64,000 nucleotides of DNA from assembly GCA_019828565.1 (NCBI GenBank), contig JAHDYR010000003.1, forward strand, positions 681,409-745,408, given 5' to 3'. Shown piece after piece: positions 3,551 through 63,429 of the stretch (positions within the stretch are counted from its first letter, which is position 1; every line of letters begins with the position of its first letter). Below the pieces are notes generated by a model, which did not search any database, was not told the DNA's origin, and was given only the letters and a program-made list of their open reading frames with translations. Both the position numbers and the translations under genes were made by a program. The DNA comes from Carpediemonas membranifera BICM. Lineage: Eukaryota > Protista > Fornicata.

Positions 3551-4369
3551 TAATGATAGCGAGGAAGCACCTCTCTGGGAGTCGTAGTGGAAAGGAGATT
3601 GCTCTATCTGATCTGAAGTTGCATCGTGGGTGCACCAAAGGATGTTCTCGCTGGCGCTCTTATCTCGGTGAGAGAGATTGAGAAGTTTGTCTCTCTGCTC
3701 GGGATGCCGACGTAGCCGTTCAACGCGCCATGGAGCTCCCTCGCACGCGGGATTCTGGCAGAGCATGGTGCGGTGTGTGTGCACCACACGTCGGAAGTGT
3801 GCTTTGCAGTATGGCCACACGATGGAAGTGCGGATTCCGAGACCATCGTGACACTCACGACGACGTTGTGCCGGAGCATGATGCCAGGAAGAGCTCGAGC
3901 AAAGTGGCGGTACGGAGCACAGGAGGGAGTGCCGGCGGAACCGAACAGTGCAGCCCCATACGCGACTTCGAGGTGAATGGGCTCCGGGGGGCGCCCGCCG
4001 AGATCATCCAGGAGTTGACGTCCAGCCCGGGCGAAGTGCTTCAGGCGCAGACAGTGATTGGCAAAAGTCGCACGGCGGAAACACTTTCTAGTCCCCTCGT
4101 TGATGATTTGAACGATACACTCTGCCCGTCTGGGCGGCGGATCGTGTAGCCGCCCAGCGACCGAGCACCAGGGTCGAAGCCCATGAGAGCTTGAATGTCC
4201 GGGGCAGGAGTAGCCTCGGCGTCATCCTGACCGAGCCGAGCCCGCTTGTTGCTGCTACCCTTTTTGTACGTGGGCCGGTCAGGGTCATTGTTGAGTCTAA
4301 ATCCCAGGGGGGTCGACAGCCTAAGTCACCTTTACATGAATCCTCCACATAAACCATCTAAATACCACA
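3407..4369 (-). mobile_element. Fanzor element copy A, internally deleted and non-autonomous
   Basis: Near-identical to the termini and 3' part of 40916-43402. Lacks about 40984-42397 and about 42564-42688 of B. Flanked by the direct duplication ttggaag (3401-3407 and 4370-4376). Confidence 0.9.
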
Positions 4370-4412
4370 TTGGAAGTGACATATTCTGCGAAAAACTATT
4401 CGCGCGAAAGCA

Positions 4413-11252: not shown

Positions 11253-14200
11253 ATGAGCGCAATCGGCGATGAAAACGCAGGCGATAGAATCTTTGGGGGC
11301 AAAAGGCTTCCAACGATCATTCCAGGGCTTGTTGACGATGAGAACCGCCTTGCAGGCGATAACGTCGAACAGAACGCACCAGAGAACGAACAGATGCAGA
11401 ATGAGGATGTTCGTGACACAAATCAACGGAATACTATCCCAGTTGTTGTTCCGCCACTCAGGAACGCCAACCACATTGAGATCGAAGCCGGGAACGACCC
11501 CGACCATGAGACAGGCTGGTACCATGAGCGAGTATTCCAGCCTGTGGTGCTCGACAACCGCAATGCGCTCGACCTCAACCACCTCCAGGATCTGGCGCAG
11601 GATCCCGACCTGCAGCCCATTATCGCCCAGAATGCTCACATCGCGGCACCTCCGGCAGAAAGGCAACATGGCCATGACGCGGAGCCCTATGTGCCTGCCT
11701 CTATCGAGCAGACTGACCTTGGCAATGCCCCACTCGACGCCATGATGCCACTCGACGGTCTCCTGGGAATACTCGACCGGGAACTGCCGCCCGTGATTGA
11801 GCCAGAGCCAGTCAATACCTCTGAGCCAACCCAGCCGGCTCCAAAGGTCGGGGCTAGGTCAGGTAGTCGGCAAACTACTGCTGTCGGAAAGCCGCGAGTC
11901 GATCAGTTGCTGGCGCAGAAAGAAGCTCTCATGAAGGAGTGCGCTGACAAGCTAGGTCGGCTAGAGGCACGTCAGGCGATCCAGGAGGCGCTAAAGGAGA
12001 GAGGTCGGCTCACTCGCCCAGTTATCAGGCACACGCCGGGGAATCTGCCGAGAGAGTGGAGCTTCGAGATCAGCGAGCCGAGCCTGGCAGGAACGCAGGA
12101 CAGTCAGAAGAAGAAACGGACGGCAGCGAAGAAGGCGATCCTCAGTGCCGAGGTCAAGGTCCTGCAGGCTGAGTCCCAGTACGCGGACCGCTCTCTGGTT
12201 GCCACTGAGGCCGCCATACGCCATGCTATGGCGGGCGAGCAGGACGATTCCGTGGAAGCGGAGCTAGCACGGGTCGACCCGGTAGTTGTTCCAGACACAC
12301 AACGGATGCTGTCGAAGGGGAAGGCAGACATGGACAAGGAGGCGATGGTCCAAGTCGAGATCGAAGTTGTGCGGCTCCGCGGTCAGATAGAGGAGTACGA
12401 TACAGCCCTGGGCATGCTCGGCGTTGAACTCCCCCCGCCGGAGCAGGTCAGCGACGAGGATACGGGAGTCGTGGAAGCGGGGCAGGCCAGCAGCGGGAAG
12501 CCCGATGCTATCCGCCAGCAAAAGTGCCGTGCGAACAAGAGAGTGCGTAATGCCAGACTCAACGCCGTTAAGCGACAGAGAGCAGTGCTGGTTACCGCGC
12601 TGAGGGATCGAAAGGGGGCCCTAACCGAGGCCCTCGCCCCAGATCAGCCCCCTGCCGGCCAGAAGCGCAAGCCTAGTACCCGGCGAGATGACAAGCCTGA
12701 CAAACGAGCAAACTGCCTGGATGACTTCGACGGCAGCGGCTCGAGCGGCGTCATCCTGAGCTACTTCCGGGTGATGTCTGACCTCCTCGACATGGACGTC
12801 GGCGAGGGCACAACACCCGCTCCCCTGCTCAAGAAGATGTTCGTAGCGGTCTCGCATGACAACGGCGAGGAGGTCCGCAAGCTGCTCACAGCCGGCGCTC
12901 TGCCGACAGATGTGTACAAGGGCTCAACCCTGCTCGAACACGCATGCGAGGCGGGTGCAGCAGAGGCGGCCAGGGCCCTCATCGACGCAGGAGCCAACCC
13001 GCGAGACCAGCTGCTACGGGCTGCAGCCGACGGCCACGGGGACACCGCCCTGCTCTGCCTCGACAGGGGCGCCGATGTCAACGCTGCAGACCCAAGCGGA
13101 GACCTACCGCTGCATATCGCCGTCAGAAACGACTTGTTCGACTTGCTGGAAGCGCTCATCGGACGACCTGACTGTGAGATCAACGCCACCAACGATCGGA
13201 ACATCACCGCGCTCTTCTCGGCATGCAGTCGTGGCAAGACCAACGCGCTGGAACTCCTCATCAAGGCCGGAGCCGACCTGGACATCCCTAGTGTGCAGGG
13301 CTACACGGCGCTGCATGTCGCCGCTAAGGACCGCAACGCCGCCTTCGTCCGCATGCTGCTTGACGGAGGCGCCGACTGTACCAAGCTCCAGGGCCCCGCG
13401 CGGTTTAGCGTGCTTGACATCGCAGTCGGCCAGGCCAGCAACGCTGAGGTGATCAAGATGCTGCTCGAGGCCGAGCCAGAGCTTCGAGACAGACCCTGCG
13501 GCATGGGCACGATGCCTATCAACACTGCGATGGGGCTGGGTCGGCTGGAATCCGTCCGTGCCCTGCTCGAACATGGTGTCGACCCGAACCTGACCGTGAC
13601 TGCTGCTGCGGGCGGCAACGCGGGTGAGCTGACGCTAATCAACTTTGCTTCATTCATTAACCACATCGGCCTCCTGGAGCTCCTCATTGAGTTCGGGGCC
13701 GACGTGAATCGTCTCAATTCACAGAACATTTCACCCCTTACACTCTGCGTCAAGCAGAACAGAGTCGACTTCGCACGGGCTCTGCTCAAGACAGGGGCCG
13801 ACCCCAACATCCAGGACGACCAGGGCGTGGCCCCTGTCATGCTGGCCGCGATGGACCGGCAGTGCGGTGAGCTCGCCCGCGTGTTGGTTGAGGGGGGCGC
13901 GGACTACACGCTTGCGAACAGGGAAGGCATGACGGCCATCGATATAGCCATTGCCGCGGCAAACACCGAGATGCTCGAGGCATTGCTGGGCGACAAGACA
14001 GGCCCGGCTGTAATGTCGGACAGCAACGGTTGCCCAAGGCTGTATCTCCATGTCGCGTGCTCCAACGGCCTCACCGACATCGTCCGACTCCTCATCGAGC
14101 ACGGCGCGGACGTCAACCAGCGTAACGACAACGGGTGGAGCCCGGTGAACTCGGCCGCGTACAACGGGCACACAGAGGCGCTCAGACTCGTGCTCGCGGC

Positions 14201-29910: not shown

Positions 29911-31327
29911 CTAATGCAGCGGTGCAACGGCTTCGCTGTCGTCGAGGCCGCTGAGTACTACATTCTTGACTACGGCCGGCCCCCACGTCTGCTTCATGTC
30001 ACCAGTGCCGAGTATGCCGTCGCGGTTGGTGCCAAGGCCGAACCAGCCTTGGTCGGCCTCGAACCACCAGTTCTGCTTCTTCTGGTGCGCCGTGACGAGC
30101 TGCAGACGCTGCGAGGACTCCCACACGAAGGTGTCGCCCGTGCGCGGGTTGGTCGAGTAGACCGTGAAGCCGGGCTTGTCGGTGACGACGGCGATGAACG
30201 GATCCTGGCGTACGCCTCGCGGACTCGGTCGGTCAGCGGCACCGGCGTGGGGTCGACGCTGTCGTGGACGCCGGCGAGGCTCTTAAGCTGCCGGGGCTGG
30301 CCGCTCGTGAAGAGGCGGCCGTCGCGCAGGAAGAGGGTGAAGCCGCTGCACGGTGCACGCCGGCCCACTCGCCAGGCACGCGCGCGGGCGTCGTCACGGG
30401 GTCCGTGTGGCCCAGGCCGAGCTGGCCGGTGCGGTTGCGGCCGGTGACGTAGCGCAGCACGCGGCCGTCAGCGCCGGTGCGGGTGAAGATGGTTGCCGTG
30501 GGGAATGCTGTCGGCATGAAGGGCGCACCCGGCTGGGGCGGCGGCAGGCGGATCGGGCGGAACGTGTTGACGCACGCCTCGTCGCCCACGCCCAGCTGGC
30601 CGTTGGCGTTGGAGCCCGCGCCGAAGAGGCCGACGGAGGTCTGGATGATGGTCATGTCGGCGTGGAGGAAGACGTGCTCGATCACGGCGTGCCTCTCGAA
30701 CAGCAGACGGCTGGCCTCAAGCTCGGCGACCTCGGGCGCGTCGGGGAAGGAGACGCGACTGGGCGAGTCGACGATGGCGGTCGTTTGGCCCAGGCCGAGT
30801 TGGCCGCAGCTGTTGCTGCCCTGGGCGTAGAAGCCACGCTCGGTAGCTATGAACAGCGAGCCGTCGTTGGTGTAGAGAGCGCGGGCCCGGGGGATGCGGA
30901 GGCGGCTGAAGCTCACAGGCTCGTCCAGGAGCGTGTCGTGGCTCATCGTGAAGACTCTGCCGTCGAACAAGCGGAGCGAGATGGGGTCCCGGCCTTCTGT
31001 GAAGCCGTGGCGGACCGCTTCGCTATCGCAGACGGCCTTGTGCTTGCCCCAGATTGCGGTTGAAAGAAACGGCAAGGCGTCCGTATCTGCGCTAACACCG
31101 TCATATTCTAGGTAGTCGACGTCACAATGGGGCCAGAGGGGTGTGGATACAGTGTTGGTATCAGGAGAAACGCCGCATGATACCAGCAGGTGCCACTGAA
31201 TATTCTGGGGGAGATCAAGGATGGAAACGTTGCTATTTTGCACTTCCATGCTCTCATGCACGCAAGAAATGTCTTCTGAACCAAAAATGTCGGTGCTCAT
31301 TTGGTCTTGAAGTTTGGCACTCTTCAT
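29911..31327 (-). pseudogene. RCC1-repeat paralogue of 39262..40674 with two single-C deletions (pseudogene or assembly error)
   Basis: About 1.13 kb near-identical to 39417-40552; lacks one C in each of gtgcacccgtg and tacgcccagg. Confidence 0.8.
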
Positions 31328-33980: not shown

Positions 33981-34062
33981 TGTGATCTTGTCGAGGTTAA
34001 AGGTTTCAAAACAAACTGTTTATAGGGTTCGCACGTGTAGTTGGTACCCTAAACTGCTCACA
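33981..34062 (-). repeat. 3' LTR (82 bp)
   Basis: tgtga...tcaca; preceded on the minus strand by the polypurine tract agaggggaag (34063-34072). Confidence 0.97.
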
Positions 34063-34070
34063 CTTCCCCT

Positions 34071-37000
34071 CTAAAGGTGCAGCTCCGGGTGAGCCTCGGC
34101 ATAAATGTCGAGGGCTTCGAGGTCGCGGACCTCGTGGTACGGGAGCCACTCATCGGCGCCTGGGTAGCCATCCCAGGCGACGAGGAATTCGAGGGTAGAC
34201 TTCGTGGGGCCACCACGGTGGCGGGTGATGGCCTCGACTTCGTAGGTGTCGTCGTCAAGGGAGGCGACGGTGATGTCATCGAAGGCCAGGGAGTCGTCGT
34301 ACTCCACGAGCCGGGAACCGTGATACTGGAAGGTGGCGCCGGCAGTGGGGTTGTGTACGGTGTAGATGTCGTGCTCGCGGTCAGTGATCGTGTATGGGCC
34401 AACGAGCTTAGTAGACAGCTTGGTGGGGCGCTTCGAAGGGCGCGTGACAAGCACCTTCGAGCCAATAGGAAGGGGCTCGTCGCCGAAAGCCGGACGTTTC
34501 GAGAGGACGTTCTCTTGGTGCTGGCGTGCTGTCTCAATGAGCTTGGGCTGGGCCTGGAGAACACGGCTAAAGAAGCGGCCGTATTCACTCTTCTCCTCCC
34601 TCAACGTGGGCGTCGGACGACAGGAAGGGGGTGACGTTCTGTGAAGCGAACATGAGCTGTGCGGGGGCAATGCCCGTGGTGGCACATATCGTGGTGTTCA
34701 TGATCCGCTGGACGACTGGGAGGTAAAGGGACCAGTTGTTAACGTCGCGCAGCTCCTGAGTGATGGTACGTAGGTGTCGTGAGAGCTCGGCGTTAGCTCT
34801 TTCGACGAGCCCGTTGGCTCTGGGGTGGTATGGAAGAGAGACAACGTGTTGGGCGCCGAAGAGCTTAATGAGCTGTTGGAAAGCGGTGGCAAGGTACTGA
34901 GAACCGCGATCACTTCGGAAAGAAGACGGAGTACCGTAGCGTCCCGTGACGGAGATAAGAGCGCGAAGGGCCTCTGCAGAAGAAGCATCCTTGCATGGGA
35001 CCAGCTCTACGAAGCGTGTGAAGGTGTCAATGAAGGTGATAACGTAGCGGCATCCGTTGGAGTCTGCAGGATAAGGCCCGACCGTATCAAACGCCCAGCA
35101 GGAGCGTGGGGTGACGCCCATGGTAGGGCGGAGGCCTGTCTGAAGGCGCTTGGGAAGTCTGGCGTTCTTCTGACATATCGGGCAAGCCTTGATATACTCG
35201 GCGACAGCGTTGCTCATTCCACGGAAGTCAAGGTTTCGTTCCTTAAGGAGGCGGAGTGTAGCCTCTCGGCCGAGGTGTCCCTCGACGGCATTGTGGACAG
35301 AGGCTATGATAAGTCGCTGGAGTGTAGGGGCATTCTCGGGGGTTGGACGATGAAGCACCTGGATATGCCATCAGTGAGGGTGTTGGAGACGCCAGAGATG
35401 TGTTCAACGACAAAGTCGAACTCTTGGAGTCTGAGGTTCCAGCGGACGACCTTGGGTGTGGTAGAACGGCGCATATAAACTAGGTTACGGTGGTCTGTCT
35501 GTATAGCGAACGAGTGGCCGAGGAGATAGGGGAGTACTTCTCGACAACCGCGAAGAAGATGCCGAAGGCTTCCTTTTCGATGACAGCCCAGTTGCGCTCT
35601 GCGGTGGTGAATGCGTGGCTACAGTAGGAGACTACGTGTTCAACGCCATCCTTGACGTTGAGGAGCACGCCTCCACAGCCAATGTCGCTAGCATCGGTGC
35701 GAACGATAATTGGGGCAGAGTAGTCCAGGAAGGCTAAACACGGCGTGTGGGCGGCGAGGTTCTTGCTCTCTTCGAAAGCAGTCTGGGCCTCCTTTGTCCA
35801 TTTCCACCGGACCTTCCCAGAGGTGAGGGCGTATAGTGGCTGTAGGATCGAGCTGAGGTTGGGGATGAACCTACGGAAATAATTCATCGCTCCACAGAAG
35901 GCCCGCGTGGTCTTGATGTCCTTAGGAGGAGCCATGGCCTGAACGGCCTTGACCCGGGCGGGGGACATGCGGATTCCCTCGGGGGAGATGATATGGCCGA
36001 GGTATTTCACCTGCTCAGCGTACAGACAGCACTTGCTGGGATGAAGGACGAAGCGATGTTCCTTGAGAACGGCAAGGATCTCAGCTAGGCGTGTAGCTAG
36101 TTCGTCCGTGGTTGATGCGTGAATGATGATGTCGTCTATGAAGACCTCGCACGTAGTTCCGACAAACTTGGAGAGCAATTGGGTCATGATGGCCTGGAAG
36201 GTAGCAGGAGCCGTTTTGACGCCAAATGGAACGCGCGTATACTCATAAAGGCCGGTTGGAGTTGAAAACGCGGTTATCGGAATGGAACTTTCGGACAGTG
36301 GGATCTGGTGGTATCCACTAACGAGATCTAACGTCGCAAAGCAACGTTGGCCTGCGAGATGCGACATCAGCTCTTCTTGGTGTGCAAGTGGGAAACTGAC
36401 TTGCTTGATGCGATCATTCGCCTGACGGTAGTCCACGACGAGGCGGCGGGCACCGCCCTTTTTGGGGACAGTAAAGACGGGTGCAGCCCAGGGAGAGCGT
36501 GAGGGGCGGACGATTCCTTGAGCAAGGAGCTCGTTCACCTGGTCATCAACCTCCTGCTGGATTGCAGGGGATAGACGACGCGGCGGTTGAGCAGCCGGTG
36601 TGGCGCCCTCAAGCAGCTCTATCTCCATAGGGGGAACGTCTGCTCCGTCTGGGTGGGGACGGCTGGTGAAGACTTCGGCATACTCATCATAGACGGCTCT
36701 GATGGCTGGCGGGAGGGCAGACGCGGTTGAACCTACGTCAGGGAGCTGCTCTCCTTCATCTAGGCGAGTGACGGGTGCGTGATCCTCATCGATCGTCTCC
36801 TCATCGGCCGTTGGGGCCAAGGAGAGGGAGAGATCTTGGATAGTGGAGTTTGAGAGGATCAGATCCTCCGACATAGAGGGGAGGATGTAGAATGGCCGAA
36901 TGGAGCGAACGCCATCAATGAGCATGGCAAGGAACACAGCTCTCTTGATGAAAACTGGACCGTTCGCGGTATCCAAACGAACGTTAGCGACGGCTGGAAG

Positions 37001-37912
37001 AGCGCCACGTTGGATAAAATGATTCGGCTATCGTGGGGGAGATGAGGTCAATAGTTGCACCAGTATCAAGTACTGCACAGACCTCTGTGGCAGTACTCTC
37101 GTTGATGGGAACATAGAGAGTGGCTTGGCGACAGATGAGGCCGTCGTGATCAGTGGCGGCCAGATTCGCCTTTTCGCGCTTGACTGGCGGACCCTGGATG
37201 GGAGTCTTGCGCACGCCAGAGCGGAAGAAATCTCTGTGTCCTTGATAGGGACAGTTGGGGCGGATGTGGCCCGTATGGCCACAGCCGTGGCAGGGGCAGA
37301 CGATCGTTGGGGTAGTCTAGCCCCAGCGGCGGCGCCGGGAGTCGGGCGCTTACCAGCTGGCTGGGCCGGTTCCGGCTGCAGGAGCGACTGGAGGTTAAGG
37401 AGTTCCTCCAGTTCATCAATGGCGTGGTCCTGCGCCTCTGCGACGTCATCTGGCTGCTCCATGCGGATACGCTCCGCAAGAGGATCTGGAAGTGCCTGCA
37501 GGTATGCCTTCACCATTAGCTTCTCTGGTGGTGTGACGTCGGCTGTGAACGAGCTCCGGATAGTTTCGAAGCGTTCGATATGGTTGAGAAGCTGTGCAGG
37601 CGTTGATAAGGGGCCCGTTCGGGCGCACCGCAGCGACTTCAGCTTGGCTAGTGCTTGAACGTTACTGCGGGGGCTATAGAATGTTTGGTAGACTGTGTCC
37701 AAGACAGTATCCGCCGGAAGATCGGCCGGATTGTCGTTGAGACGGCGTGTGATGAGAAGAAGAGGCGTAGGATCCATCAGGGCAGTCGGATGGAGAAGAG
37801 GATCGTCAAGGCGTTGAGCTCGGTACGCACGGTAGGACGATCGGACAACGAACTTGGTGAACGCCTGTTCTTCTAGTGTTAGTAAGAAAGGTCTTGGTAT
37901 GTAGTCGGACAT
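34071..37912 (-). CDS. gag-pol polyprotein, interrupted by about 4 frameshifts
   Basis: ATG at 37912; ORF pieces 37028-37927, 36984-37300, 35480-36976, 34585-35358 and 34071-34685 carry consecutive domains; ends in chromodomain YEVEAITRHR...FLVAWDGY...EWLP. Confidence 0.9.
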
Positions 37913-37927
37913 TAGATGAGTGTACAC

Positions 37928-38009
37928 TGTGATCTTGTCGAGGTTAAAGGTTTCAAAACAAACTGTTTATAGGGTTCGCACGTGTAGTTGGTACCCTAAA
38001 CTGCTCACA
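37928..38009 (-). repeat. 5' LTR (82 bp)
   Basis: Identical to 33981-34062. Confidence 0.97.
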
Positions 38010-39261: not shown

Positions 39262-40674
39262 ATGAACGAACCGTTGAGTTCAACGATTGAAAATGACAGC
39301 TCACCCAGAGCTACAAATGGAGAAGCACACGAGTACCACTTTTCATTCTTAGATCTGCCTGTTAGCATGCAGTGGTTGCTGATGATCTCTGCTGGCGTTT
39401 CTCCCGACGCAAACGCCGTATCCACACCCCTCTGGCCCCATTGTGACGTCGACTACCTAGAATATGACGGTGTTAGCGCAGATACGGACGCCTTGCCGTT
39501 TCTTTCAACCGCAATCTGGGGCAAGCACAAGGCCGTCTGCGATAGCGAAGCGGTCCGCCACGGCTTCACAGAAGGCCGGGACCCCATCTCGCTCCGCTTG
39601 TTCGACGGCAGAGTCTTCACGATGAGCCACGACACGCTCCTGGACGAGCCTGTGAGCTTCAGCCGCCTCCGCATCCCCCGGGCCCGCGCTCTCTACACCA
39701 ACGACGGCTCGCTGTTCATAGCTACCGAGCGTGGCTTCTACGCCCAGGGCAGCAACAGCTGCGGCCAACTCGGCCTGGGCCAAACGACCGCCATCGTCGA
39801 CTCGCCCAGTCGCGTCTCCTTCCCCGACGCGCCCGAGGTCGCCGAGCTTGAGGCCAGCCGTCTGCTGTTCGAGAGGCACGCCGTGATCGAGCACGTCTTC
39901 CTCCACGCCGACATGACCATCATCCAGACCTCCGTCGGCCTCTTCGGCGCGGGCTCCAACGCCAACGGCCAGCTGGGCGTGGGCGACGAGGCGTGCGTCA
40001 ACACGTTCCGCCCGATCCGCCTGCCGCCGCCCCAGCCGGGTGCGCCCTTCATGCCGACAGCATTCCCCACGGCAACCATCTTCACCCGCACCGGCGCTGA
40101 CGGCCGCGTGCTGCGCTACGTCACCGGCCGCAACCGCACGGGCCAGCTCGGCCTGGGCCACACGGACCCCGTGACGACGCCCGCGCGCGTGCCTGGCGAG
40201 TGGGCCGGCGTGCACCCGTGCAGCGGCTTCACCCTCTTCCTGCGCGACGGCCGCCTCTTCACGAGCGGCCAGCCCCGGCAGCTTAAGAGCCTCGCCGGCG
40301 TCCACGACAGCGTCGACCCCACGCCGGTGCCGCTGACCGACCGAGTCCGCGAGGCGTACGCCCAGGATCCGTTCATCGCCGTCGTCACCGACAAGCCCGG
40401 CTTCACGGTCTACTCGACCAACCCGCGCACGGGCGACACCTTCGTGTGGGAGTCCTCGCAGCGTCTGCAGCTCGTCACGGCGCACCAGAAGAAGCAGAAC
40501 TGGTGGTTCGAGGCCGACCAAGGCTGGTTCGGCCTTGGCACCAACCGCGACGGTCGTCTTGGTCTCGGTGGCCCTGGCATGGTCTGGAAGCCCACACCCG
40601 TGAGCGTCATGCAGTCCAACTTCGACGACAGCAAGCCCGTGGACCCGCTGCGGACCCCGGCCGACCCGCGTTAG
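39262..40674 (+). CDS. RCC1/BLIP-II repeat protein with F-box-like N-terminal motif
   Basis: GSNSCGQLGLG, GSNANGQLGVG and GRNRTGQLGLG repeats; N-terminal FLDLPVSMQWLL. Confidence 0.85.
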   Translation: MNEPLSSTIENDSSPRATNGEAHEYHFSFLDLPVSMQWLLMISAGVSPDANAVSTPLWPHCDVDYLEYDGVSADTDALPFLSTAIWGKHKAVCDSEAVRHGFTEGRDPISLRLFDGRVFTMSHDTLLDEPVSFSRLRIPRARALYTNDGSLFIATERGFYAQGSNSCGQLGLGQTTAIVDSPSRVSFPDAPEVAELEASRLLFERHAVIEHVFLHADMTIIQTSVGLFGAGSNANGQLGVGDEACVNTFRPIRLPPPQPGAPFMPTAFPTATIFTRTGADGRVLRYVTGRNRTGQLGLGHTDPVTTPARVPGEWAGVHPCSGFTLFLRDGRLFTSGQPRQLKSLAGVHDSVDPTPVPLTDRVREAYAQDPFIAVVTDKPGFTVYSTNPRTGDTFVWESSQRLQLVTAHQKKQNWWFEADQGWFGLGTNRDGRLGLGGPGMVWKPTPVSVMQSNFDDSKPVDPLRTPADPR

Positions 40675-41355
40675 TTGGCTGACATTTACAGGGGGTAGTA
40701 AATGTAATTTAATACTTCAATTAGAAAAACTTCCATCCATCTGGGTGCCCCTGTGGAAAGGCGAGGACTGATTTCATGGCATGGCTCATCCTCGACTCAC
40801 CCCCTCGAACAACAGAGACTATAGCTGCCAGCTGACACACAGGGCCAGTGTGTGGAGCGCCGTTTGCCAGTATTGAGCGCAGATTGCTTTATGGTGCACT
40901 TTATGTCAGCATTATTGTGGTATTTAGAGGGTTTATGTGGAGGATTCATGTAAAGGTGACTTAGGCTTTTAGACTGAACAATTCTAATCCTGCGCAGCAC
41001 ACTACCTCCACTCACCCACTTCAGCCCTCGTCTGTACCATCGGGCTTTCGTGCTTTCAGTCGTCGGTCTGCACGAAAAGATGCGTCGTCCATCGTCTGTG
41101 TCGAACGCTGCTGTCTTCTTTCGCGTCTGTGCTCGTCTGTTACGCGCTCATCTGTCGTCCATTGCCGGCGTCTGAAGCTCATGACGTCGTCGTCTTCGTC
41201 GTCTTCGTCTGTTGTGAGAGACACTAGTGGTGGAAAGCGGTTGTAGCTAGTAGTAAAGACGCTTTGTGCTGTATGATGCTGGTTTCTTGTGTTTTGAGGG
41301 ATGCTGCTAGCTGATGAACCCTGAAAAGAAATGATCGATGCAGGCAGCTCAATAG

Positions 41356-43258
41356 ACTCCAATACCTTCCAAGATATACACGGTGAAGGCTTCCGTTAAC
41401 AAGGCCATGGGCGAGATTAACGGCGGAGGCGATAACAACGCGCCGCGGCGAGGAAATCTTGAACCCGGCATGCGTTCTTTCACGCAGGCTAAGTACACAT
41501 TCACTTGCCTGCTTGCGTGCGTCTCTGCATCTGCGCACGCGTTGACCCCACCGAGGACGGTCAACCTGTTCGACGAGGAGGTCCTCACGCAGATCGTCAG
41601 CATTGCTCAGCAAAAGGTGTCGAGGGCAAAGGCAGCGGATCGGTGCAGGTGGATTTGCGACCTGGCGATGTGGAGGGACCCTGGCATAACCCCACTCGTC
41701 CGGGACTTCAGGGAAGCCTACGTTGGAATTGCAGCGCCATTTCAGAGCTGGTTGGGTGAGTACTCCACAGTCACCCGGGTCTGGCTCTCGCGCGCGTCAC
41801 CCGCGTACCTGACCCGTCTTCGTGCTGGATTAGAACGGGTGCGTCCGCTCCTCCATGATCGGCCGGGTGTTCGACAGGATTTTCCCGACACCCAAGGCGA
41901 GCTCGACACTGAGGTTGCCGCCATAGCCGCCGATCATGACATGCATCATCGTCAAATGCATGCATCGCCCGAGGGGCAACGGGTGGGTCGCACTGGTACC
42001 GTGGCCGAGGCTCTCGTCGGCGTGCTGTCGTGCGTCACGCGCATGAGTGCTGCAGTGACCAAGCTGGTCACACTCCCTCGTGCCGTGAACCTCGAGCTCA
42101 GTCAGGCCCTGCCAGAGCCGAAGCTCGTCCCGTTCGTGCCGATGGCACCGGTCAGGCCTGGGTTCATAACCATCGAGCGCGGAGTAACAGCGCTCACCCC
42201 AGCGATGAAGAGGCGCCTGCGTGTGCACGTGAATTGGTCAGCAACCAAGAATTTGACCGACGAGCAGGTTGATAGATACGAGCGTGATCACGGCGACATC
42301 ACCAAGCTCCGCAGAGTGCTCTCTGTGAAGACAGACGGGGTCTCTGCTGCTGTGACGGTTTGGGTGGGCTGCGAGAAATACCGTGGCGGTCGGGTGGCTG
42401 ACCGGCCCACGTACAAAAAGGGTAGCAGCAACAAGCGGGCTCGGCTCGGTCAGGATGACGCCGAGGCTACTCCTGCCCCGGACATTCAAGCTCTCATGGG
42501 CTTCGACCCTGGTGCTCGGTCGCTGGGCGGCTACACGATCCGCCGCCCAGACGGGCAGAGTGTCTGGCGTACTCGCTAAGTGTGGCTACACTGCCACCCC
42601 CTCTTTCCGCGTGAATATGAGCGTAGCATCGTTCAAAACGACAAGTCTAGAGGCTCTCAAACAGTCGATTAGATTTGTCCATGAGAACATCGTTCAGATC
42701 ATCAACGAGGGGACTAGAAAGTGTTTCCGCCGTGCGACTTTTGCCAATCACTGTCTGCGCCTGAAGCACTTCGCCCGGGCTGGACGTCAACTCCTGGATG
42801 ATCTCGGCGGGCGCCCCCCGGAGCCCATTCACCTCGAAGTCGCGTATGGGGCTGCACTGTTCGGTTCCGCCGGCACTCCCTCCTGTGCTCCGTACCGCCA
42901 CTTTGCTCGAGCTCTTCCTGGCATCATGCTCCGGCACAACGTCGTCGTGAGTGTCACGATGGTCTCGGAATTCCGCACTTCCATCGTGTGGCCATACTGC
43001 AAAGCACACTTCCGACGTGTGGTGCACACACACCGCACCATGCTCTGCCAGAATCCCGCGTGCGAGGGAGCTCCATGGCGCGTTGAACGGCTACGTCGGC
43101 ATCCCGAGCAGAGAGACAAACTTCTCAATCTCTCTCACCGAGATAAGAGCGCCAGCGAGAACATCCTTTGGTGCACCCACGATGCAACTTCAGATCAGAT
43201 AGAGCAATCTCCTTTCCACTACGACTCCCAGAGAGGTGCTCTTCCTCGCTATCATTAA
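41356..43258 (+). CDS. Fanzor1 (TnpB-like RuvC RNA-guided nuclease), about 630 aa, one frameshift near 42560, start uncertain
   Basis: YTVKASV N-terminal strand, SVKTDGVSA, RuvC-I GFDPG (D at 42505), VAYGAALFG, RuvC-II SEFRTS (E at 42968), WPYC...CQNPAC Zn-finger region, RuvC-III HRDKSASENI (D at 43142). Confidence 0.9.
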
Positions 43259-43402
43259 CTTGCTAAGTTGAGCAAACACGCGCTGCAGCGCGCGTGATAT
43301 GCTGCGCACGATTGATAGAGTATGATGAACCACACTGCGATCCTGATGCTGCTTGGATCACTGTGTGTTTTGGACTCAACAATTCTAATCCTGCGCAGCA
43401 CA
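43259..43402 (+). ncRNA. Candidate Fanzor omegaRNA scaffold (copy B)
   Basis: Hairpin cacgcgc-tgca-gcgcgcgtg, then a long stem tgctgcgca...tgcgcagca enclosing the hairpin cacactgcgatcc...ggatcactgtgtg; ends at the element terminus. Confidence 0.65.
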
Positions 43403-43413
43403 ATTATTTCGAG

Positions 43414-43812
43414 ATGGAGCCACAGCACGAAACCGAAGTGGATATTCCCACAAATGTAGGAGAAGAGCTCAAGGAGGAATCTATGCCGGTTGAGAAGCCC
43501 ATGACGTCTGCAGATCTCTTCACCTCCCTGAAAAGTTATCTTTCCTCTCATCTCTCCGAAGCAGTGAATGATCTGGACCTCCTTGCTGATCTTAACAAGC
43601 TTGGTGCCGAGAAGTACGAGCAGATGGCCAAGTTTTGCGGCCAGCTCATCCCCCAAGGCGAGGCGATGACAGAAGCATTCAAGCAGATCCAGCCCCATCT
43701 TGAGGAGATTGATGAGCTGATCAGCAACATTTCTGGTCTAGAGGCCACTGTGAATGCCCTGGACCACTACACGAAGGCGCTGCAGGGCAAGCTCGAGACG
43801 ATCCTCCGCTAG
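43414..43812 (+). CDS. BLOC1S2: BLOC-1 subunit 2 (BLOS2)
   Basis: DLDLLADLNKLGAEKYEQM...IQPHLEEIDEL...LEATVNALDHYTKALQGKL. Confidence 0.8.
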   Translation: MEPQHETEVDIPTNVGEELKEESMPVEKPMTSADLFTSLKSYLSSHLSEAVNDLDLLADLNKLGAEKYEQMAKFCGQLIPQGEAMTEAFKQIQPHLEEIDELISNISGLEATVNALDHYTKALQGKLETILR

Positions 43813-45194: not shown

Positions 45195-48100
45195 CTACCT
45201 CCCTCTGCCATATCCGTCGTATCCAAACGATATCCGGCTGGTGGAGTATCTTTTGTTGAGATCCTGCATCGTCGCGGGTGAGATGGCCGTGCTGCCGATC
45301 CTCAGCGGGTACGTCCCCGTCGCCCCGGGCCGCCGCATCGACGTCGGGTCTGACCCCGTCTCGAGGCGGTACCGGAGCCCCGGCATCTCGCGGCACATGC
45401 GGCGGTTGCGGCCGAGGATCTTCATGCGGCACATCGCCCTGACCGCGAGCATCGCCACGCGGAGCCGGCGTCTGGCCTTCATGGGCCCCATTCTCCGGCG
45501 TACCGGGGAGATTGCGATGGGGGCGATGACCCGCTGATGCTGCATGCCCGTCATCAGCGTCCGCACGTAGTCGAGCGCCTCCTTCTCAGCCCGCTTAAGC
45601 TGCGCGGACTCGGACTCCGCGGCGGCCTTGTCCCTCGAGAGCCGCTCGATGACCATCTCCGAGTCGGCCAACGCTCGCTGGAGTCGAGCGAGCTGCTCGG
45701 CCGGATCGGGCTGGGGCTCGGGTGTGGCGCTGCGAAGCGTGGCGACGGTCTGCTTCAGTCCGCGGATCTCGCCGTCCTGCTGGGCAATCGTCTGGGCCTG
45801 GTCGGCGTTCAGCTGCTGGTACCGGCTGACGTCGGCGCTGAGTCGCGCGATCTCGGCCCGGAGCTCCCTGTTCACGGCCAGCATCTCCGCACCGTGCGCA
45901 TGCTGCTGCTCGTCCTGGAGCTGTGCGATCGTCTGCTCCTTAACCTGCACCTGCTCTCTGAGATCGACCAGGTTGCGCTGCATCGCCGCCAGCTGGCTGC
46001 TGACGGACTCGAACCCGGCGCTGTCCCCGGGCCCCTTGGCTTGTCTGATCTCGGCGAGGAGGGAGTCGCGGTGGCTGGCCAAGATGCGCTCGATATCAAC
46101 ATCGCGAGGCTGGGCACGCGGGGTGCCTGGGCGGTCGGCGAGTCGTTTGACCGTGCCGATGAGCGTCTCGGACGGCTTCACACCGCGTTCAATGCACATC
46201 GTATCCAATTTCTGCCGTATCTCCGAGATTGCCTTGATCTGGGCCTTCTGTGAAGCAACGAGCTCGAGAACACTGTCCCAGGACTGGGCCTCGAGCTCAG
46301 GCCCCTCAAGCACCGCGGCCAGCCTTGCTTTGAGCTGTGACAGGTCAGCGGCGGCCGTGGCATCGTGTTCCTGGGCCGACGCGAGGATCTTTCTATACCC
46401 TGCGGCAATCGCGTCAACAACCTTCCTCATGCTCTCGCCGCCCTGCTCCCGGACACCGGCGACGGCGGCCTCGAGACGGGTGCGGTCCACCTCGCCCCCG
46501 TACGCGGCCTGCGCTAGCTGGGCGATTACTCTCGGATCCAGCTCGTCCTCCTCGACGGCCTCGAGGGCCTCTACGGGCCAATCGGGTGGCGCCGTCATGG
46601 CGAGGGCGTCGTCCAGGTCAGCCCTGCTGAGGGAGGCAGGGGCATGAGGGGCACTGAGCTCGAGGTCGATGTCGGACGGCTTCACCGACATGAACAGGGC
46701 GTCGTCTACGGCCTGCTTAGGGCGTACAAGGTCGTCGATGCGGGCCTCCAGCTGTGTCCGCTGGTCCAGGAGCTCATTCACACGGGCCCTGGCATTGGCC
46801 AGCTCTTCGGACAGTGCATCGGCTCTCTCCGTGACAGAGTTGAGGCGCTGGGTGACGGCCTTGTTCTCGGAGGTCAGACGCTTCTTCTCGGCCTCCACTG
46901 CCTCCATATCACGTCTAATGGCATCGACCTGGGTCTTAGCGTCAGCCTTGGCGCCCTCCTCGCGCTGAACGAGCCCTGTCTCGAGCTTCATGACCTTCTC
47001 CTGCAGCAGCGCGTTGTCCGCGCTGAGGTCGGCCTTCGCTTCGAGCAGGAGCGACACCTCGTGCCGCAGTCCGCCAGCCTCCCTGGTGAGCGCTGCCTTT
47101 TCCTCGCCGAGGATGTCATTGAGCGCCTGCAACTCCTTCTGGCGGGCTGCAGTGGTTCTAACTTCCGTCAGCTTCTGCTCCAGCTTGCCAACAGCGTCCT
47201 CGAGCGCCGCCTTCGCCTCCGCCAGCACGGAGCTTTCCTTCTGTAGCTCCACTACCCTATTGGCTGCCTCCTCGCTGGTGTGCAGGGCGTCGTCCAGCGT
47301 CGCCCGGAGATCATCGGCCTCCGCTAGCGAGGCGTCGAGCTTGGCCTGCAGTCCAGCGGCCTGAGTCTCAAACGGCGCGAGTCGGGCGACCTCGCCCTTC
47401 GCCTTCCGCAGCTCTCTGCCCCGACTCTCGAGGGCCTGCTGAACACCGGCCATGCTCTCTTGGTATGTCGCCGCAGACGAGTCAAGCTCAGCCTCGAGGG
47501 ACTCCTTGCCGGCCCGGGCCTGGGCGACGTCCTCGTGGGCGGCGTGGAGCTCCCGGCGGACGCGGGTGAAGTCGCGGGTCAGGCCAAGGTGGTCCTCGCG
47601 GAGCTTGGCGAGCTTCTGCTCGAGCTCGGTCTGGGTAGACTCGCGGTCCTTGGCGGACTCCTCGAGGCGGGTCTCAAGAGCGGCCTTCTCCTCGCGGATC
47701 TCGGCGAGCTTCTGCTCGAGCTCGGTCTGGGTAGACTCGCGGTCCTTGGCGGACTCCTCGAGGCGGGTCTCGAGAGCGGCCTTCTCCTCGCGGATCTCGG
47801 CAAGCTTCTGCTCGAGCTCGGTCTGGGTAGACTCGCGGTCCTTGGCGGACTCCTCGAGGCGGGTCTCGAGAGCGGCCTTCTCCTCGCGGATCTCGGCGAG
47901 CTTCTGCTCGAGCTCGGTCTGGATAGACTCGCGGTCCTTGGCGGACTCCTCGAGGCGGGTCTCAAGAGCGGCCTTCTCCTCGCGGATCTCGGCAAGCTTC
48001 TGCTCGAGCTCGGTCTGGGTAGACTCGCGGTCCTTGGCGGACTCCTCGAGGCGGGTCTCGAGAGCGGCCTTCTCCTCGCGGATCTCGGCAAGCTTCTGCT

Positions 48101-50990
48101 CGAGCTCGGTCTGGGTAGACTCGCGGTCCTTGGCGGACTCCTCGAGGCGGGTCTCAAGAGCGGCCTTCTCCTCGCGGATCTCGGCAAGCTTCTGCTCGAG
48201 CTCGGTCTGGGTAGACTCGCGGTCCTTGGCGGACTTCTCGAGGCGGGTCTCAAGAGCGGCCTTCTCCTCAGCGACGGAAGCGACCTGGGTCTCAAGAGCG
48301 GCCTTCTCCTCAGCGACGGAAGCGACCTGGGTCTCGAGAGCGGCCTTCTCCTCGCGGATCTCGGCAAGCTTCTGCTCGAGCTCGGTCTGGGTAGACTTGC
48401 GGTCCTTGGCGGACTCCTCGAGGCGGGTCTCAAGAGCGGCCTTCTCCTCGCGGATCTCGGCGAGCTTCTGCTCGAGCTCGGTCTGGGTAGACTCGCGGTC
48501 CTTGGCGGACTCCTCGAGGCGGGTCTCAAGAGCGGCCTTCTCCTCGCGGATCTCGGCGAGCTTCTGCTCGAGCTCGGTCTGGGTAGACTCGCGGTCCTTG
48601 GCGGACTCCTCGAGGCGGGTCTCGAGAGCGGCCTTCTCCTCGCGGATCTCGGCGAGCTTCTGCTCGAGCTCGGTCTGGGTAGACTCGCGGTCCTTGGCGG
48701 ACTCCTCGAGGCGGGTCTCGAGAGCGGCCTTCTCCTCGCGGATCTCGGCAAGTTTCTGCTCGAGCTCGGTCTGGGTAGACTCGCGGTCCTTGGCGGACTC
48801 CTCGAGGCGGGTCTCGAGAGCGGCCTTCTCCTCGCGGATCTCGGCAAGCTTCTGCTCGAGCTCGGTCTGGGTAGACTCGCGGTCCTTGGCGGACTCCTCG
48901 AGGCGGGTCTCAAGAGCGGCCTTCTCCTCGCGGATCTCGGCGAGCTTCTGCTCGAGCTCGGTCTGGGTAGACTCGCGGTCCTTGGCGGACTCCTCGAGGC
49001 GGGTCTCGAGAGCGGCCTTCTCCTCGCGGATCTCGGCGAGCTTCTGCTCGAGCTCGGTCTGGGTAGACTCGCGGTCCTTGGCGGACTCCTCGAGGCGGGT
49101 CTCAAGAGCGGCCTTCTCCTCGCGGATCTCGGCGAGCTTCTGCTCGAGCTCGGTCTGGGTAGACTCGCGGTCCTTGGCGGACTCCTCGAGGCGGGTCTCG
49201 AGAGCGGCCTTCTCCTCGCGGATCTCGGCGAGCTTCTGATCGAGCTCGGTCTGGGTAGACTCGCGGTCCTTGGCGGACTCCTCGAGGCGGGTCTCAAGAG
49301 CGGCCTTCTCCTCGCGGATCTCGGCAAGCTTCTGCTCGAGCTCGGTCTGGGTAGACTCGCGGTCCTTGGCGGACTCCTCGAGGCGGGTCTCAAGAGCGGC
49401 CTTCTCCTCGCGGATCTCGGCGAGCTTCTGCTCGAGCTCGGTCTGGGTAGACTCGCGGTCCTTGGCGGACTCCTCGAGGCGGGTCTCGAGAGCGGCCTTC
49501 TCCTCGCGGATCTCGGCGAGCTTCTGCTCGAGCTCGGTCTGGGTAGACTCGCGGTCCTTGGCGGACTCCTCGAGGCGGGTCTCAAGAGCGGCCTTCTCCT
49601 CGCGGATCTCGGCGAGCTTCTGCTCGAGCTCGGTCTGGGTAGACTCGCGGTCCTTGGCGGACTCCTCGAGGCGGGTCTCAAGAGCGGCCTTCTCCTCGCG
49701 GATCTCGGCAAGCTTCTGCTCGAGCTCGGTCTGGGTAGACTCGCGGTCCTTGGCGGACTCCTCGAGGCGGGTCTCAAGAGCGGCCTTCTCCTCGCGGATC
49801 TCGGCGAGCTTCTGCTCGAGCTCGGTCTGGGTAGACTCGCGGTCCTTGGCGGACTCCTCGAGGCGGGTCTCAAGAGCGGCCTTCTCCTCAGCGACGGAAG
49901 CGACCTGGGTCTCGAGAGCGGCCTTCTCCTCGCGGATCTCGGCAAGCTTCTGCTCGAGCTCGGTCTGGGTAGACTCGCGGTCCTTGGCGGACTCCTCGAG
50001 GCGGGTCTCAAGAGCGGCCTTCTCCTCGCGGATCTCGGCGAGCTTCTGCTCGAGCTCGGTCACGGAGGTCTCAAGGGCGGTCTTGTCCGCCTTCACAGCC
50101 TCCAACTCAGCATTCGCCTTCATTAGCTTCTTCTCCCGCGCGCCCTTATCGAGCTCAAGAGCGATCGACTTTTTCCTGAAGTCGGCCCGCTCGGCCTTGG
50201 TTGCCGCCAGTGACGACGCCAGCTGTTCCTTCTCCTCGGACAGCTTTTCGACCTTTGTCTTGTAGTCTGCGATCTCAACCCTGTGTCGAGCCTCCTTGGA
50301 CTCGAAGCCGTCCTGGGCCGCCGCAAGCTTGCGCTTCATGTCCTCAAGCTCGATCTCAAGCACTGAGTGTCTATATAGAATGTCTGCCTTCTCCTCTCTG
50401 AGCTCGGTCACGACCTTGTCCATCGCGGAGACCTTATCCAGCAGCTCGTATTTCTCGGTGGCGAGCTCGTTCGACTGGTGTTGTAGATACTCGTTGTGGC
50501 TGTTCAGCTTCTCCACCTTCTCGGCCATGCTGTTGTACTCAGTCCGCAGCATGCTGAGGTCCTCGTTGTGGTGGATCAGGTCGGCAGTCTTCACCTCCTC
50601 CTGCCGCTTCAGCTGTACTGACGCCAAATCCTGCTGGGAAGCGATGATCTCGTCCATAACAGCAGCTAGCTCCTTCAGGGTGTCCATGGTCGGGGCGGTG
50701 TCCTCCTGCAGGAGCTTCTTCCGGGCGAGTAGGTCCGTCATCTTGCCCTCGAGCGTGCTGTGGCGAGTAAGATCAAGGAAAGGCGTGTCTAGCGGCGCGT
50801 GGTCCCGTGCACTGCTCTCCTTTGTTGCGTCTGAGCGGACAGGAGTCCATGTAGGTGCCGGGGGGGCGGGAATGCTGCTCGATGGCGGCGCAGCGGCCGA
50901 TGGGGTTGCGGATGTTGGCGTTTGGTTCACATTGCGCTTCTTATAGCGACGCAACGCTTGCTCCATCCGGGCACTCTTGTCAGCGTCCAT
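45195..50990 (-). CDS. Giant coiled-coil protein with 32-aa tandem repeats and C-terminal PACT-like motif
   Basis: About 1930 aa from ATG 50990; KARRRLRVAMLAVRAMCRMKIL near the C-terminus. Confidence 0.8.
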   Translation of the reverse strand: MDADKSARMEQALRRYKKRNVNQTPTSATPSAAAPPSSSIPAPPAPTWTPVRSDATKESSARDHAPLDTPFLDLTRHSTLEGKMTDLLARKKLLQEDTAPTMDTLKELAAVMDEIIASQQDLASVQLKRQEEVKTADLIHHNEDLSMLRTEYNSMAEKVEKLNSHNEYLQHQSNELATEKYELLDKVSAMDKVVTELREEKADILYRHSVLEIELEDMKRKLAAAQDGFESKEARHRVEIADYKTKVEKLSEEKEQLASSLAATKAERADFRKKSIALELDKGAREKKLMKANAELEAVKADKTALETSVTELEQKLAEIREEKAALETRLEESAKDRESTQTELEQKLAEIREEKAALETQVASVAEEKAALETRLEESAKDRESTQTELEQKLAEIREEKAALETRLEESAKDRESTQTELEQKLAEIREEKAALETRLEESAKDRESTQTELEQKLAEIREEKAALETRLEESAKDRESTQTELEQKLAEIREEKAALETRLEESAKDRESTQTELEQKLAEIREEKAALETRLEESAKDRESTQTELEQKLAEIREEKAALETRLEESAKDRESTQTELDQKLAEIREEKAALETRLEESAKDRESTQTELEQKLAEIREEKAALETRLEESAKDRESTQTELEQKLAEIREEKAALETRLEESAKDRESTQTELEQKLAEIREEKAALETRLEESAKDRESTQTELEQKLAEIREEKAALETRLEESAKDRESTQTELEQKLAEIREEKAALETRLEESAKDRESTQTELEQKLAEIREEKAALETRLEESAKDRESTQTELEQKLAEIREEKAALETRLEESAKDRESTQTELEQKLAEIREEKAALETRLEESAKDRKSTQTELEQKLAEIREEKAALETQVASVAEEKAALETQVASVAEEKAALETRLEKSAKDRESTQTELEQKLAEIREEKAALETRLEESAKDRESTQTELEQKLAEIREEKAALETRLEESAKDRESTQTELEQKLAEIREEKAALETRLEESAKDRESIQTELEQKLAEIREEKAALETRLEESAKDRESTQTELEQKLAEIREEKAALETRLEESAKDRESTQTELEQKLAEIREEKAALETRLEESAKDRESTQTELEQKLAKLREDHLGLTRDFTRVRRELHAAHEDVAQARAGKESLEAELDSSAATYQESMAGVQQALESRGRELRKAKGEVARLAPFETQAAGLQAKLDASLAEADDLRATLDDALHTSEEAANRVVELQKESSVLAEAKAALEDAVGKLEQKLTEVRTTAARQKELQALNDILGEEKAALTREAGGLRHEVSLLLEAKADLSADNALLQEKVMKLETGLVQREEGAKADAKTQVDAIRRDMEAVEAEKKRLTSENKAVTQRLNSVTERADALSEELANARARVNELLDQRTQLEARIDDLVRPKQAVDDALFMSVKPSDIDLELSAPHAPASLSRADLDDALAMTAPPDWPVEALEAVEEDELDPRVIAQLAQAAYGGEVDRTRLEAAVAGVREQGGESMRKVVDAIAAGYRKILASAQEHDATAAADLSQLKARLAAVLEGPELEAQSWDSVLELVASQKAQIKAISEIRQKLDTMCIERGVKPSETLIGTVKRLADRPGTPRAQPRDVDIERILASHRDSLLAEIRQAKGPGDSAGFESVSSQLAAMQRNLVDLREQVQVKEQTIAQLQDEQQHAHGAEMLAVNRELRAEIARLSADVSRYQQLNADQAQTIAQQDGEIRGLKQTVATLRSATPEPQPDPAEQLARLQRALADSEMVIERLSRDKAAAESESAQLKRAEKEALDYVRTLMTGMQHQRVIAPIAISPVRRRMGPMKARRRLRVAMLAVRAMCRMKILGRNRRMCREMPGLRYRLETGSDPTSMRRPGATGTYPLRIGSTAISPATMQDLNKRYSTSRISFGYDGYGRGR
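47605..50060 (-). repeat. 96-bp coding tandem repeat (about 24 copies) with three 42-bp variant units
   Basis: Unit TELEQKLAEIREEKAALETRLEESAKDRESTQ; variant QVASVAEEKAALET. Confidence 0.97.
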
Positions 50991-62196: not shown

Positions 62197-62272
62197 GTGG
62201 CACTCCATTGATTATCATCTGTTGAACTGAAGTATCATAGAGTGCACAGTGCAAGCACTGCGTCTCTCCACT
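62197..62272 (-). ncRNA. Candidate omegaRNA scaffold (copy C)
   Basis: gcagtg-cttg-cactgt hairpin followed by the stem gcactctatgat...atcaatggagtgc ending in cac; same layout as family 1. Confidence 0.5.
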
Positions 62273-63324
62273 TCAATTAGCTTGCCCGGAGGCGAAGACT
62301 AGCGGCTGGTTAGCCGTAATTGGTGTATTGGGGTTATAGTTGGGAAGACGGGCTGGAGGTCTTGGATTTCTGAAAGCACTGGCTTGATACTGTGCATCCG
62401 TCATGAGGCCGCAATCCAAGATGTTCTGTGCAGCAGTCTTGTCTCTGTGGGAGAGATTGAGCCAAGTGGTGGTAGTAGGATCGGAATTGAGGCGTTGCTT
62501 GTAGCTCTGGATCCGTTAAATCTCGAATGAACTACTTTAACCTGCGGGGCAGACCCAGCGATAAATATCACACTGCACCGCCTTCCCGTGGCTGACCTGC
62601 GGTCAAGTAGAAATCTAACGATATCGTCATTTTGCACTTTAACCGCGATCTGGCGAGCGATGGGCGTTTGGCAAGACCTCGGTCATGCATAATCAACAGC
62701 ACGTGGGCGGGCGTTATCACCGATTTGGGCATCGCGGGCGCGCCACTGAGCACCACGGCACTGTGGATTTTCGCAGAGCATAACACGATGTGGGTGAACG
62801 TGCTGGTCATCACGCGGACGAACTCGCTTGTAGGTGGCGTGGCAGTGAGGGCAGACGACGGTGGTGCGATCCTCGTTAACCATGTTAAGATCGACGACAA
62901 TGTTATACCTCTTGAGAAGGGGAACTATCTCTCTCGCGAACTTTCGATATGGCGCGCAAGGAATGAACATACCAGCAGGCGTGGTGAATCCCGAGCTCCC
63001 GTAGAAGACTTTCAGGCGAATGGGGGTGGCGATGGGATGGTGGCGACGTGTGAGCGATTGTGATGTTGCAGCTGTGCTGACGTCCACGAAGAAGACGCTT
63101 TGTGGAAGCCCTGGAGAAGACGATCTCCCTACCGACTTTAGACGTGAGTAGGAGGGAGACAGGGCAGTGTTGCGCAGTATAAACACATTGTTTGACCCTT
63201 CAATAGCACAAGATGATTTACCTTAAAGTGCGAAGTCGCAAACTTTGCGGGAGGGACACCTGCCGTTGCGTTTCGAAGTGTGTCACAACCTTCACATTGA
63301 TCGGTTTGACCCTTCAATAGCACA
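62197..63324 (-). mobile_element. Fanzor element copy C: second, diverged family, deleted and degenerate
   Basis: VFYGSSGF...CAPYRKFAREI...VNEDRTTVVCPHC...CENPQC and, in another frame, WLNLSHRDKTAAQNILDC (stop at 62273); left-end-like tgtgctattgaagggt at 63324 and 63210; boundaries are approximate. Confidence 0.8.
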
Positions 63325-63429
63325 GCTTCGCGTTGGCTAAAGTGCGAAACACAGGGTTTGGTTAAACTGCATACGGGCTGGATGACCGCATCCTTGCCAA
63401 TAACAGTGAAGGAAGAAGGTGTATCACAG

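Follow-up and report, generated by a model that had tools for sequence, protein, structure and literature searches.

The window analysed here, a stretch of 64,000 nucleotides, comes from Carpediemonas membranifera, a free-living protist known to lack ORC. Its genome measures 24.2 Mb with 57% GC (PMC8516963), in agreement with the window. At 40916-43402 on the plus strand lies a Fanzor1 element that we refer to as copy A. A 5-bp target site duplication (TSD), ATTAT, stands on each side of it, at 40911-40915 on the left and at 43403-43407 on the right (both plus strand), so that the termini and duplication proposed in a first-pass annotation of this DNA were right. Together with the flank beyond it, the right-hand TSD is the predicted guide region, a role transferred from described Fanzors (PMC10711439). 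Copy A opens with an internally deleted left unit (40916-41001, plus strand), in which 52 bp from the start of the left end (TGTGG...) run straight into an inner right-end copy (40967-41001, plus strand). The latter is a 35-bp direct repeat of 43368-43402, identical at 33 of 35 positions and absent from the first-pass annotation. There follow, on the same strand, the 5' non-coding part of the Fanzor cassette (41002-41361), which is rich in pyrimidines, 95-97% identical in other copies and presumed to be promoter/UTR, a Fanzor1 pseudogene (41362-43258), and a candidate omegaRNA scaffold (43259-43402) of two short hairpins and a long stem, formed by pairing of 43300-43313 with 43387-43400.

With its break allowed for, the pseudogene comprises 632 codons from the conserved start position to the stop, in line with the roughly 630 residues proposed before. 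Its landmarks on the plus strand include a TDG at 42334, corresponding to the TDGVS motif of the first-pass annotation, and a basic NLS-like stretch from 42412, while the D-E-D triad is confirmed as the Asp of GFDPG (42505), the Glu of SEFRT (42968) and the Asp of RDKSASENI (43142). The start codon, formerly described as unclear, is actually lost: the conserved start of the family, MPSKIYTVKAS, is an ATA at 41362, and an upstream ATG is blocked by a TAG at 41353. The frameshift that had been placed in a GT run near 42560 is real; its supposed origin by GT slippage, however, is ruled out by alignment, as eight other copies read GAGTGTATCTGG where copy A reads GAGTGTCTGG, the two bases AT being missing right after 42563. 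Furthermore, the first zinc-finger Cys has become Trp (42989-42991). Copy A is thus dead, since these three separate lesions (start codon, 2-bp loss, Cys to Trp) make an active protein impossible.

Immediately downstream, a host BLOC1S2-like gene (43414-43812, plus strand; Pfam BLOC1_2, E 1.6e-19) has its ATG 11 nt from copy A, which now splits the gene from an upstream host motif, GCACTTTATGTC, at 40896-40907 (plus strand). This motif lies outside the element, is the best position weight matrix (PWM) match in the 80 bp upstream of it, and occupies positions -20 to -9 relative to the left end. Two further copies are present in the window. Copy B (3406-4369, minus strand) is a deleted subfamily-1 copy, 99.4-100% identical to copy A where shared, with the TSD TCCAA and the motif at -20. 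Copy C (62228-63324, minus strand) is a mosaic of a subfamily-3 left end and RuvC-II region, a chromodomain-Gypsy 3' end piece at about 62500-62690 and a subfamily-2 3' end, and has no matching TSD. It had been noted that the first zinc-finger Cys is Trp in A and B but Cys in C, all of which is correct, except that C derives from other subfamilies. At 63190-63348, two subfamily-3 left ends are separated by 114 bp, and a site resembling the motif precedes each of them by 21 bp.

Elsewhere in the window, a full-length chromodomain Gypsy (33981-38009, minus strand) has identical and unusually small LTRs of 82 bp, a 4-bp TSD (GGCC), a polypurine tract and a frameshifted pol, and no tRNA-type primer site. 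It is flanked by a recent inverted duplication (98.5%) of an RCC1-repeat gene (30017-31201 and 39367-40553) that ends just upstream of copy A. On the minus strand at 47593-49889, 24 near-identical 96-bp repeats lie within a coiled-coil ORF of 1965 aa. More chromodomain Gypsy families, nested, inverted and tandemly duplicated, occupy positions 1-1600 of locus L001 and 230-5845 of locus L003.

The family and its composite build

Searching with the N-terminal ORF of copy A returned 40 proteins, all from C. membranifera and up to 97% identical. In total at least 110 predicted family proteins were retrieved, which fall into three subfamilies that are 44-50% identical, and D-E-D plus four Cys are complete in 22 of them. 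All family loci were taken from assembly GCA_019828565.1. The first-pass annotation had inferred a recently mobile, possibly undescribed metamonad family, and each part of this holds: subfamily-1 copies are 93-99.6% identical, the host is C. membranifera, and no description was found in the searchable literature, where Fanzor and Carpediemonas do not co-occur. The searched text of the three main Fanzor surveys does not mention metamonads, and the C. membranifera genome is absent from two supplements of one of them. The searches made found no relatives outside the C. membranifera genome. The family accounts for more than 1% of the predicted proteome, and eight unselected copies or solo units in roughly 290 kb suggest, as a rough extrapolation, several hundred copies genome-wide. 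Some public protein names, among them cytosine deaminase, Cdc73 and Smc, sit on Fanzor copies or on gene models fused with them (P0008, P0030 and P0032).

Between copies pN/pS is 0.33-0.91, the top value belonging to a pair that includes the dead copy A. The Cys-to-Trp variant is common to copy A, copy B and a third copy on the same contig; a defective lineage thus went on moving, and the element does not depend on its own Fanzor for mobility. Family members often show deletions, chimeric structures (P0025/L026, L007, copy C) or captured host DNA (L027). In the style of Pack-element capture, host gene fragments lie inside or next to subfamily-3 copies at 9408-9791 of L027 and 16571-16721 of L025, namely the 3' end of Vps4 and a dynein piece that is duplicated 3.4 kb away. 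Elsewhere in L027, 42 bp matching the left unit of subfamily 1 are followed by five telomere-like TAAGG repeats (11522-11590) and adjoin a subfamily-3 copy.

An exact 5-bp TSD is found in 16 of 18 two-ended copies, and these sequences are all different, GC-rich and AT-rich alike. The elements end in TG...CA (subfamily 2 begins TGAAG) and have imperfect terminal inverted repeats of 5-16 bp. All three subfamilies share one architecture, in which the left unit comes first, then a non-coding stretch rich in pyrimidines, and finally the Fanzor ORF with the right end behind it. The left unit measures 43-251 bp, its longest form being at 9933-10183 of L008, and its final 30-35 bp repeat the right end, while the second right-end copy, at the element terminus, supplies the 3' arm of the predicted RNA stem. 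In subfamilies 2 and 3, left units are found solo as well, each with a 5-bp TSD of its own (L025 14060-14102 and L002 9836-9901). The subfamily-1 left unit shows variable deletions, always rejoined at the T run ahead of the inner repeat. In every copy the inner and outer repeats carry fixed differences and are of unequal length, and their variants do not co-vary within copies, which disfavours reverse transcription as their origin. These composite ends, the solo units, the random TSD and the promoter-motif targeting described below were all missing from the first-pass annotation.

On its opposite strand, the longest subfamily-1 left unit contains the final 55 codons and stop of a gene. This tail has a diverged homologue elsewhere, with 74% nucleotide identity, the same stop and a third-position bias (17 versus 10 and 9), and had no match in the searches run; it may be the remnant of a partner gene. 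The tail lies at 9982-10140 of L008 and at 942-1115 of L027, on the minus strand in both. The second of these belongs to a sequence at 905-1115 of L027 that is related to the subfamily-1 left unit but diverged, and that has a TGTG-like end; it is possibly a fourth family or a parent element. As stated earlier, the element encodes no transposase, and neither the roughly 110 related proteins nor 324 kb of this genome yielded one, the only integrases seen being those of Gypsy.

The protein and its predicted 3' RNA

The protein of the window element is, on motifs and profile homology, a very divergent new member of Fanzor1, as the first-pass annotation had proposed. The published Fanzor fingerprint (PMC10711439) consists of DPG and a Glu six residues ahead of CxxC, and the family carries both together with the RuvC-III Asp. 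GFDPG at RuvC-I is invariant in all three subfamilies. The catalytic Glu precedes the first CxxC as E547-x6-C554 in P0053 (the first Cys being the Trp of copy A), and the Asp after the zinc finger lies in RDKxA, aligned to the RDxNA of Fanzor1. P0053 (J8273_4472) is an intact natural copy, with an uninterrupted ORF of 642 aa (L003 10001-11929) in which D392, E547, D605 and four Cys are present; because it exists, the consensus reconstruction once suggested is not needed.

The profile comparison with Fanzor1 that had been proposed was run as HHalign. An alignment of the three subfamilies matched authentic Fanzor1 over 316 colinear columns with a probability of 95.5% (E 1.5e-8), with the WED strand, TDG, DPG, bridge-helix region, catalytic Glu, CxxC and RD...NIL all in register. 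Against a Fanzor2-type set, picked by motif rather than by verification against structures, the match covered 81 columns at 52%, and a reversed control gave 0%. The Fanzor1 reference set consists of giant-virus proteins retrieved by their RuvC-II pattern, and was confirmed as Fanzor1 by its matches to PpFz1 (E 1e-29), SpuFz1 (3e-25) and GtFz1 (8e-15). With the RuvC-II region that had served to pick this set left out, the part of the protein ahead of that motif gave by itself a weak match to Fanzor1, at E 0.006, still better than the controls (0.096 and 0.88). Sequence searches of Pfam, NCBIfam, PHROGs and PDB, in which the two pieces of the broken copy A ORF were searched separately and P0053 represented the full length, returned no significant match, the best being a Cas12f1-like TNB domain at E 0.016. 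Homologue searches and exhaustive phmmer retrieved Carpediemonas only, within the length window of the homologue tool, and locus scans of viral, metagenome and prokaryote collections yielded no relative of the family. AlphaFold models reached pLDDT 37 and 30, and their top Foldseek hits, Cas12f and viral TnpB-like proteins, fell short of significance (E 0.09 or TM of about 0.1). Nuclease activity of the intact copies is therefore inferred from motifs and profile homology, rather than from a fold match.

The structured 3' segment noticed in the first pass stands as well. The 144 nt downstream of the stop are predicted to form two short hairpins and a long stem closing at the element end, with the TSD unpaired (z -3.8), and fold better than 200 of 200 shuffles. 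In subfamilies 2 and 3 the full segments differ in sequence but adopt the same three-stem layout (z -2.1 to -6.4), which matches that described for Fanzor1 RNAs (PMC10711439), and Rfam gave no match for the segment. The fold of subfamily 3 is strand-specific (z -4.4 sense versus -1.9 antisense). In subfamily 1 it is the antisense strand that folds better (z -5.6 versus -3.8 sense), so its hairpin could partly reflect DNA inverted repeats. We regard the three-stem fold as a candidate omegaRNA.

Target sites and movement

Across the sequence examined, the motif GCAG(T/A)(T/A)TA(T/A)G(T/C) has 21 matches in 238 kb, where 0.8 were expected. Of 90 genes free of the element, 6 have it 28-69 bp upstream, a rate about 18 times that of coding DNA. 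It is also present within Gypsy LTRs and, in reverse orientation, close to the right end of subfamily 3. Because it is enriched upstream of genes and occurs inside Gypsy LTRs, it is probably a promoter element for a subset of genes, and one that is apparently undescribed for Carpediemonas. In the window, GCAGTTTATG(T/C)(C/A) is found at 2352, 24784, 32114, 52948 and 61715, and it recurs at other loci. A sigma-70 scan was empty and is irrelevant here; a Dada-like tRNA target was rejected, Rfam and tRNA scans being empty too.

A PWM trained solely on element-free sites was used to score the best match in the 80 bp left of each element. In subfamily 1, 7 of 8 copies have this match at -20/-19; subfamily 3 has it at -21 for 5 of 7 ends, and all 5 copies of subfamily 2 carry it at -24 on the opposite strand. 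The three insertions retrieved once the rule was fixed all obey it. Insertion thus takes place at a subfamily-specific, fixed offset from a promoter-associated motif, which suggests a target recognition different from that of known Fanzors.

With some confidence, we consider copy A a dead member of a high-copy, non-autonomous DNA transposon family that carries a divergent Fanzor1 and its omegaRNA. A DDE/integrase-type transposase acting in trans would cut the outermost ends, and use of the inner right end instead would yield solo units. This transposase may be placed at promoters by the motif itself or by a host protein bound to it, and the conserved gene tail of the left unit may be a leftover of the gene for this partner. 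Intact copies would make a Fanzor-omegaRNA complex with the right-hand flank as guide, as is known from other Fanzors, and this complex could cut the vacated site, where repair from the sister or from another copy would restore or spread the element. Fanzor-driven homing at vacated sites has been reviewed (PMC13565253). As the host has no NHEJ (PMC8516963), this repair would be homologous or based on microhomology, and it would account as well for the frequent microhomology deletions, chimeric copies and host DNA capture. The TAMs described for Fanzor1 are short and AT-rich and contain a fixed 5' TSD (PMC13565253), a typical though not strictly defining trait. Since the duplicated bases are random here, such a TSD-based TAM cannot apply, and a relaxed or spaced TAM is required. 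The best guess for it would be the motif's 3' half, (T/A)G(T/C)C, then 3-4 free bases and a guide that begins with the TSD. The fuller proposal, in which a Fanzor1 is combined with a new promoter-targeted, integrase-type carrier (possibly LTR-derived) and the nuclease reads a spaced or relaxed TAM, with the motif 3-4 bases off the guide, is tentative and on present evidence doubtful. Replication that depends on recombination, in a host without ORC and NHEJ, might even be fed by hundreds of RNA-guided R-loops or breaks at promoters, but this is extremely improbable.

The main rival is an LTR-derived carrier: the element would be a non-autonomous, TRIM-like derivative of an LTR retrotransposon, its terminal units being tiny LTRs on the strand opposite to Fanzor, and would be moved by a promoter-tethered chromodomain-Gypsy integrase, as in Tf1. 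The TG...CA ends, very short inverted repeats, direct repeats and solo units all fit this, and in all three subfamilies a purine-rich antisense tract (16-18 of 20) adjoins the inner repeat, although this tract may merely be the pyrimidine-rich 5' UTR. Moreover, chromodomain Gypsy elements whose short LTRs hold the same motif are common in the genome regions examined, and the subfamily-2 unit is weakly similar to one Gypsy LTR (p 0.01, uncorrected). Yet in each copy the two units show fixed differences and unequal lengths, with variants unshared within a copy, no tRNA (TGG) primer site is seen by inspection, and no retrotransposon is known to encode a Fanzor (PMC13565253). In the sole complete Gypsy, the 82-bp LTRs are identical, the TSD measures 4 bp and the motif is missing at -20, and mobilisation by this element of the window is accordingly disfavoured. 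Taken together, we hold an LTR origin to be unlikely.

Could the nuclease itself take part in choosing the site, or has it ceased to be a nuclease? If the GCAG motif were TAM plus seed, a break or R-loop made by the Fanzor complex might recruit the element, and both the lack of a transposase among the sequences searched and the subfamily-specific offsets of 8-12 bp from the motif, within the cutting range of the TnpB family, would agree with this. However, a fixed guide that would match the motif is absent from the element, an integrase is indicated by the clean TSDs of 5 bp and the exact TG...CA ends, and solo units and dead-Fanzor copies are equally mobile, which leaves nuclease-directed integration very improbable. 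Alternatively, the protein may be a decayed or repurposed passenger, e.g. one that binds DNA under RNA guidance and so shields the element or regulates the nearby promoter. Most copies are broken, their divergence is extreme, pN/pS is moderately below 1, and a random TSD abolishes the usual signal for self and non-self; against this, D-E-D and the zinc finger are retained across three subfamilies at 44-50% identity, and we deem a passenger role quite unlikely. Under the preferred reading, a non-autonomous DNA transposon with its Fanzor1, intact natural enzymes from three subfamilies make direct candidates for a TAM that is different or relaxed, because the TSD is random and the sole conserved target sequence is the offset promoter motif. 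This matters for editing range and for how Fanzors discriminate between empty and occupied sites. A spaced or relaxed TAM, if true, would mean a Fanzor with a new targeting rule; an LTR-derived carrier, if true, would be the first retroelement with a Fanzor. Fanzors are furthermore extended to the Metamonada through a lineage missed by standard searches, a composite, promoter-targeted carrier joins the list of Fanzor hosts, and an undescribed, probable promoter motif is exposed in a eukaryote known for its lack of ORC and NHEJ.

Comparison with known systems

The retrotransposons Tf1 and Ty3, like the Carpediemonas family, insert at a fixed offset on either side of a promoter-bound site and make a 5-bp TSD. 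The family differs from them in having no gag-pol, no identical LTRs and no visible primer site. TG...CA ends are shared with Ginger2/TDD and IS481EU (PMC2836005, PMC10045372), apart from the TGAAG start of subfamily 2, and the 5-bp TSD with TDD-4/5, TSDs in Ginger2/TDD being 4-5 bp. In contrast, the inverted repeats of Ginger2/TDD span about 45-300 bp against 5-16 bp here, and no integrase-like gene was found in the Carpediemonas family. In the literature searched on Ginger2/TDD and IS481EU (PMC2836005, PMC10045372), a Fanzor is unreported. KolobokP (PMC9587614) is similar in build: it too has an internal nuclease gene between direct repeats with short inverted repeats of their own, as well as solo units with TSDs. 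However, its repeats are about 450 or 660 bp, versus unequal units of 43-251 bp here, its nuclease is of the His-Me finger type instead of an RNA-guided Fanzor, and its TTAA target and Kolobok transposase are not seen in Carpediemonas.

Fanzor2 elements of the IS607 type have a serine recombinase partner and no TSD, whereas this family has 5-bp TSDs, and no recombinase gene was present in any family locus examined. Compared with Fanzor1 (SpuFz1, GtFz1, PpFz1 and the giant-virus proteins), the family is alike in size (632-642 aa), in the motif order TDG...DPG...E-x6-CxxC...RD with its colinear profile match, and in the three-stem RNA at the right end, which is predicted here. Like Spu-1 (PMC10432273), the element has no transposase. 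Spacing resembles that of viral Fanzor1, being 58 between TDG and DPG (viral 50-55) and 155 between DPG and E (viral 158-167). The family differs in its second Cys pair, which reads CxNPxC, and in an identity below 20% within the profile alignment, and it is invisible to single-sequence searches. Where known Fanzor1 has a fixed, AT-rich TAM/TSD, the TSD here is random, and composite ends, promoter-motif targeting and a very high copy number further set the Carpediemonas family apart.
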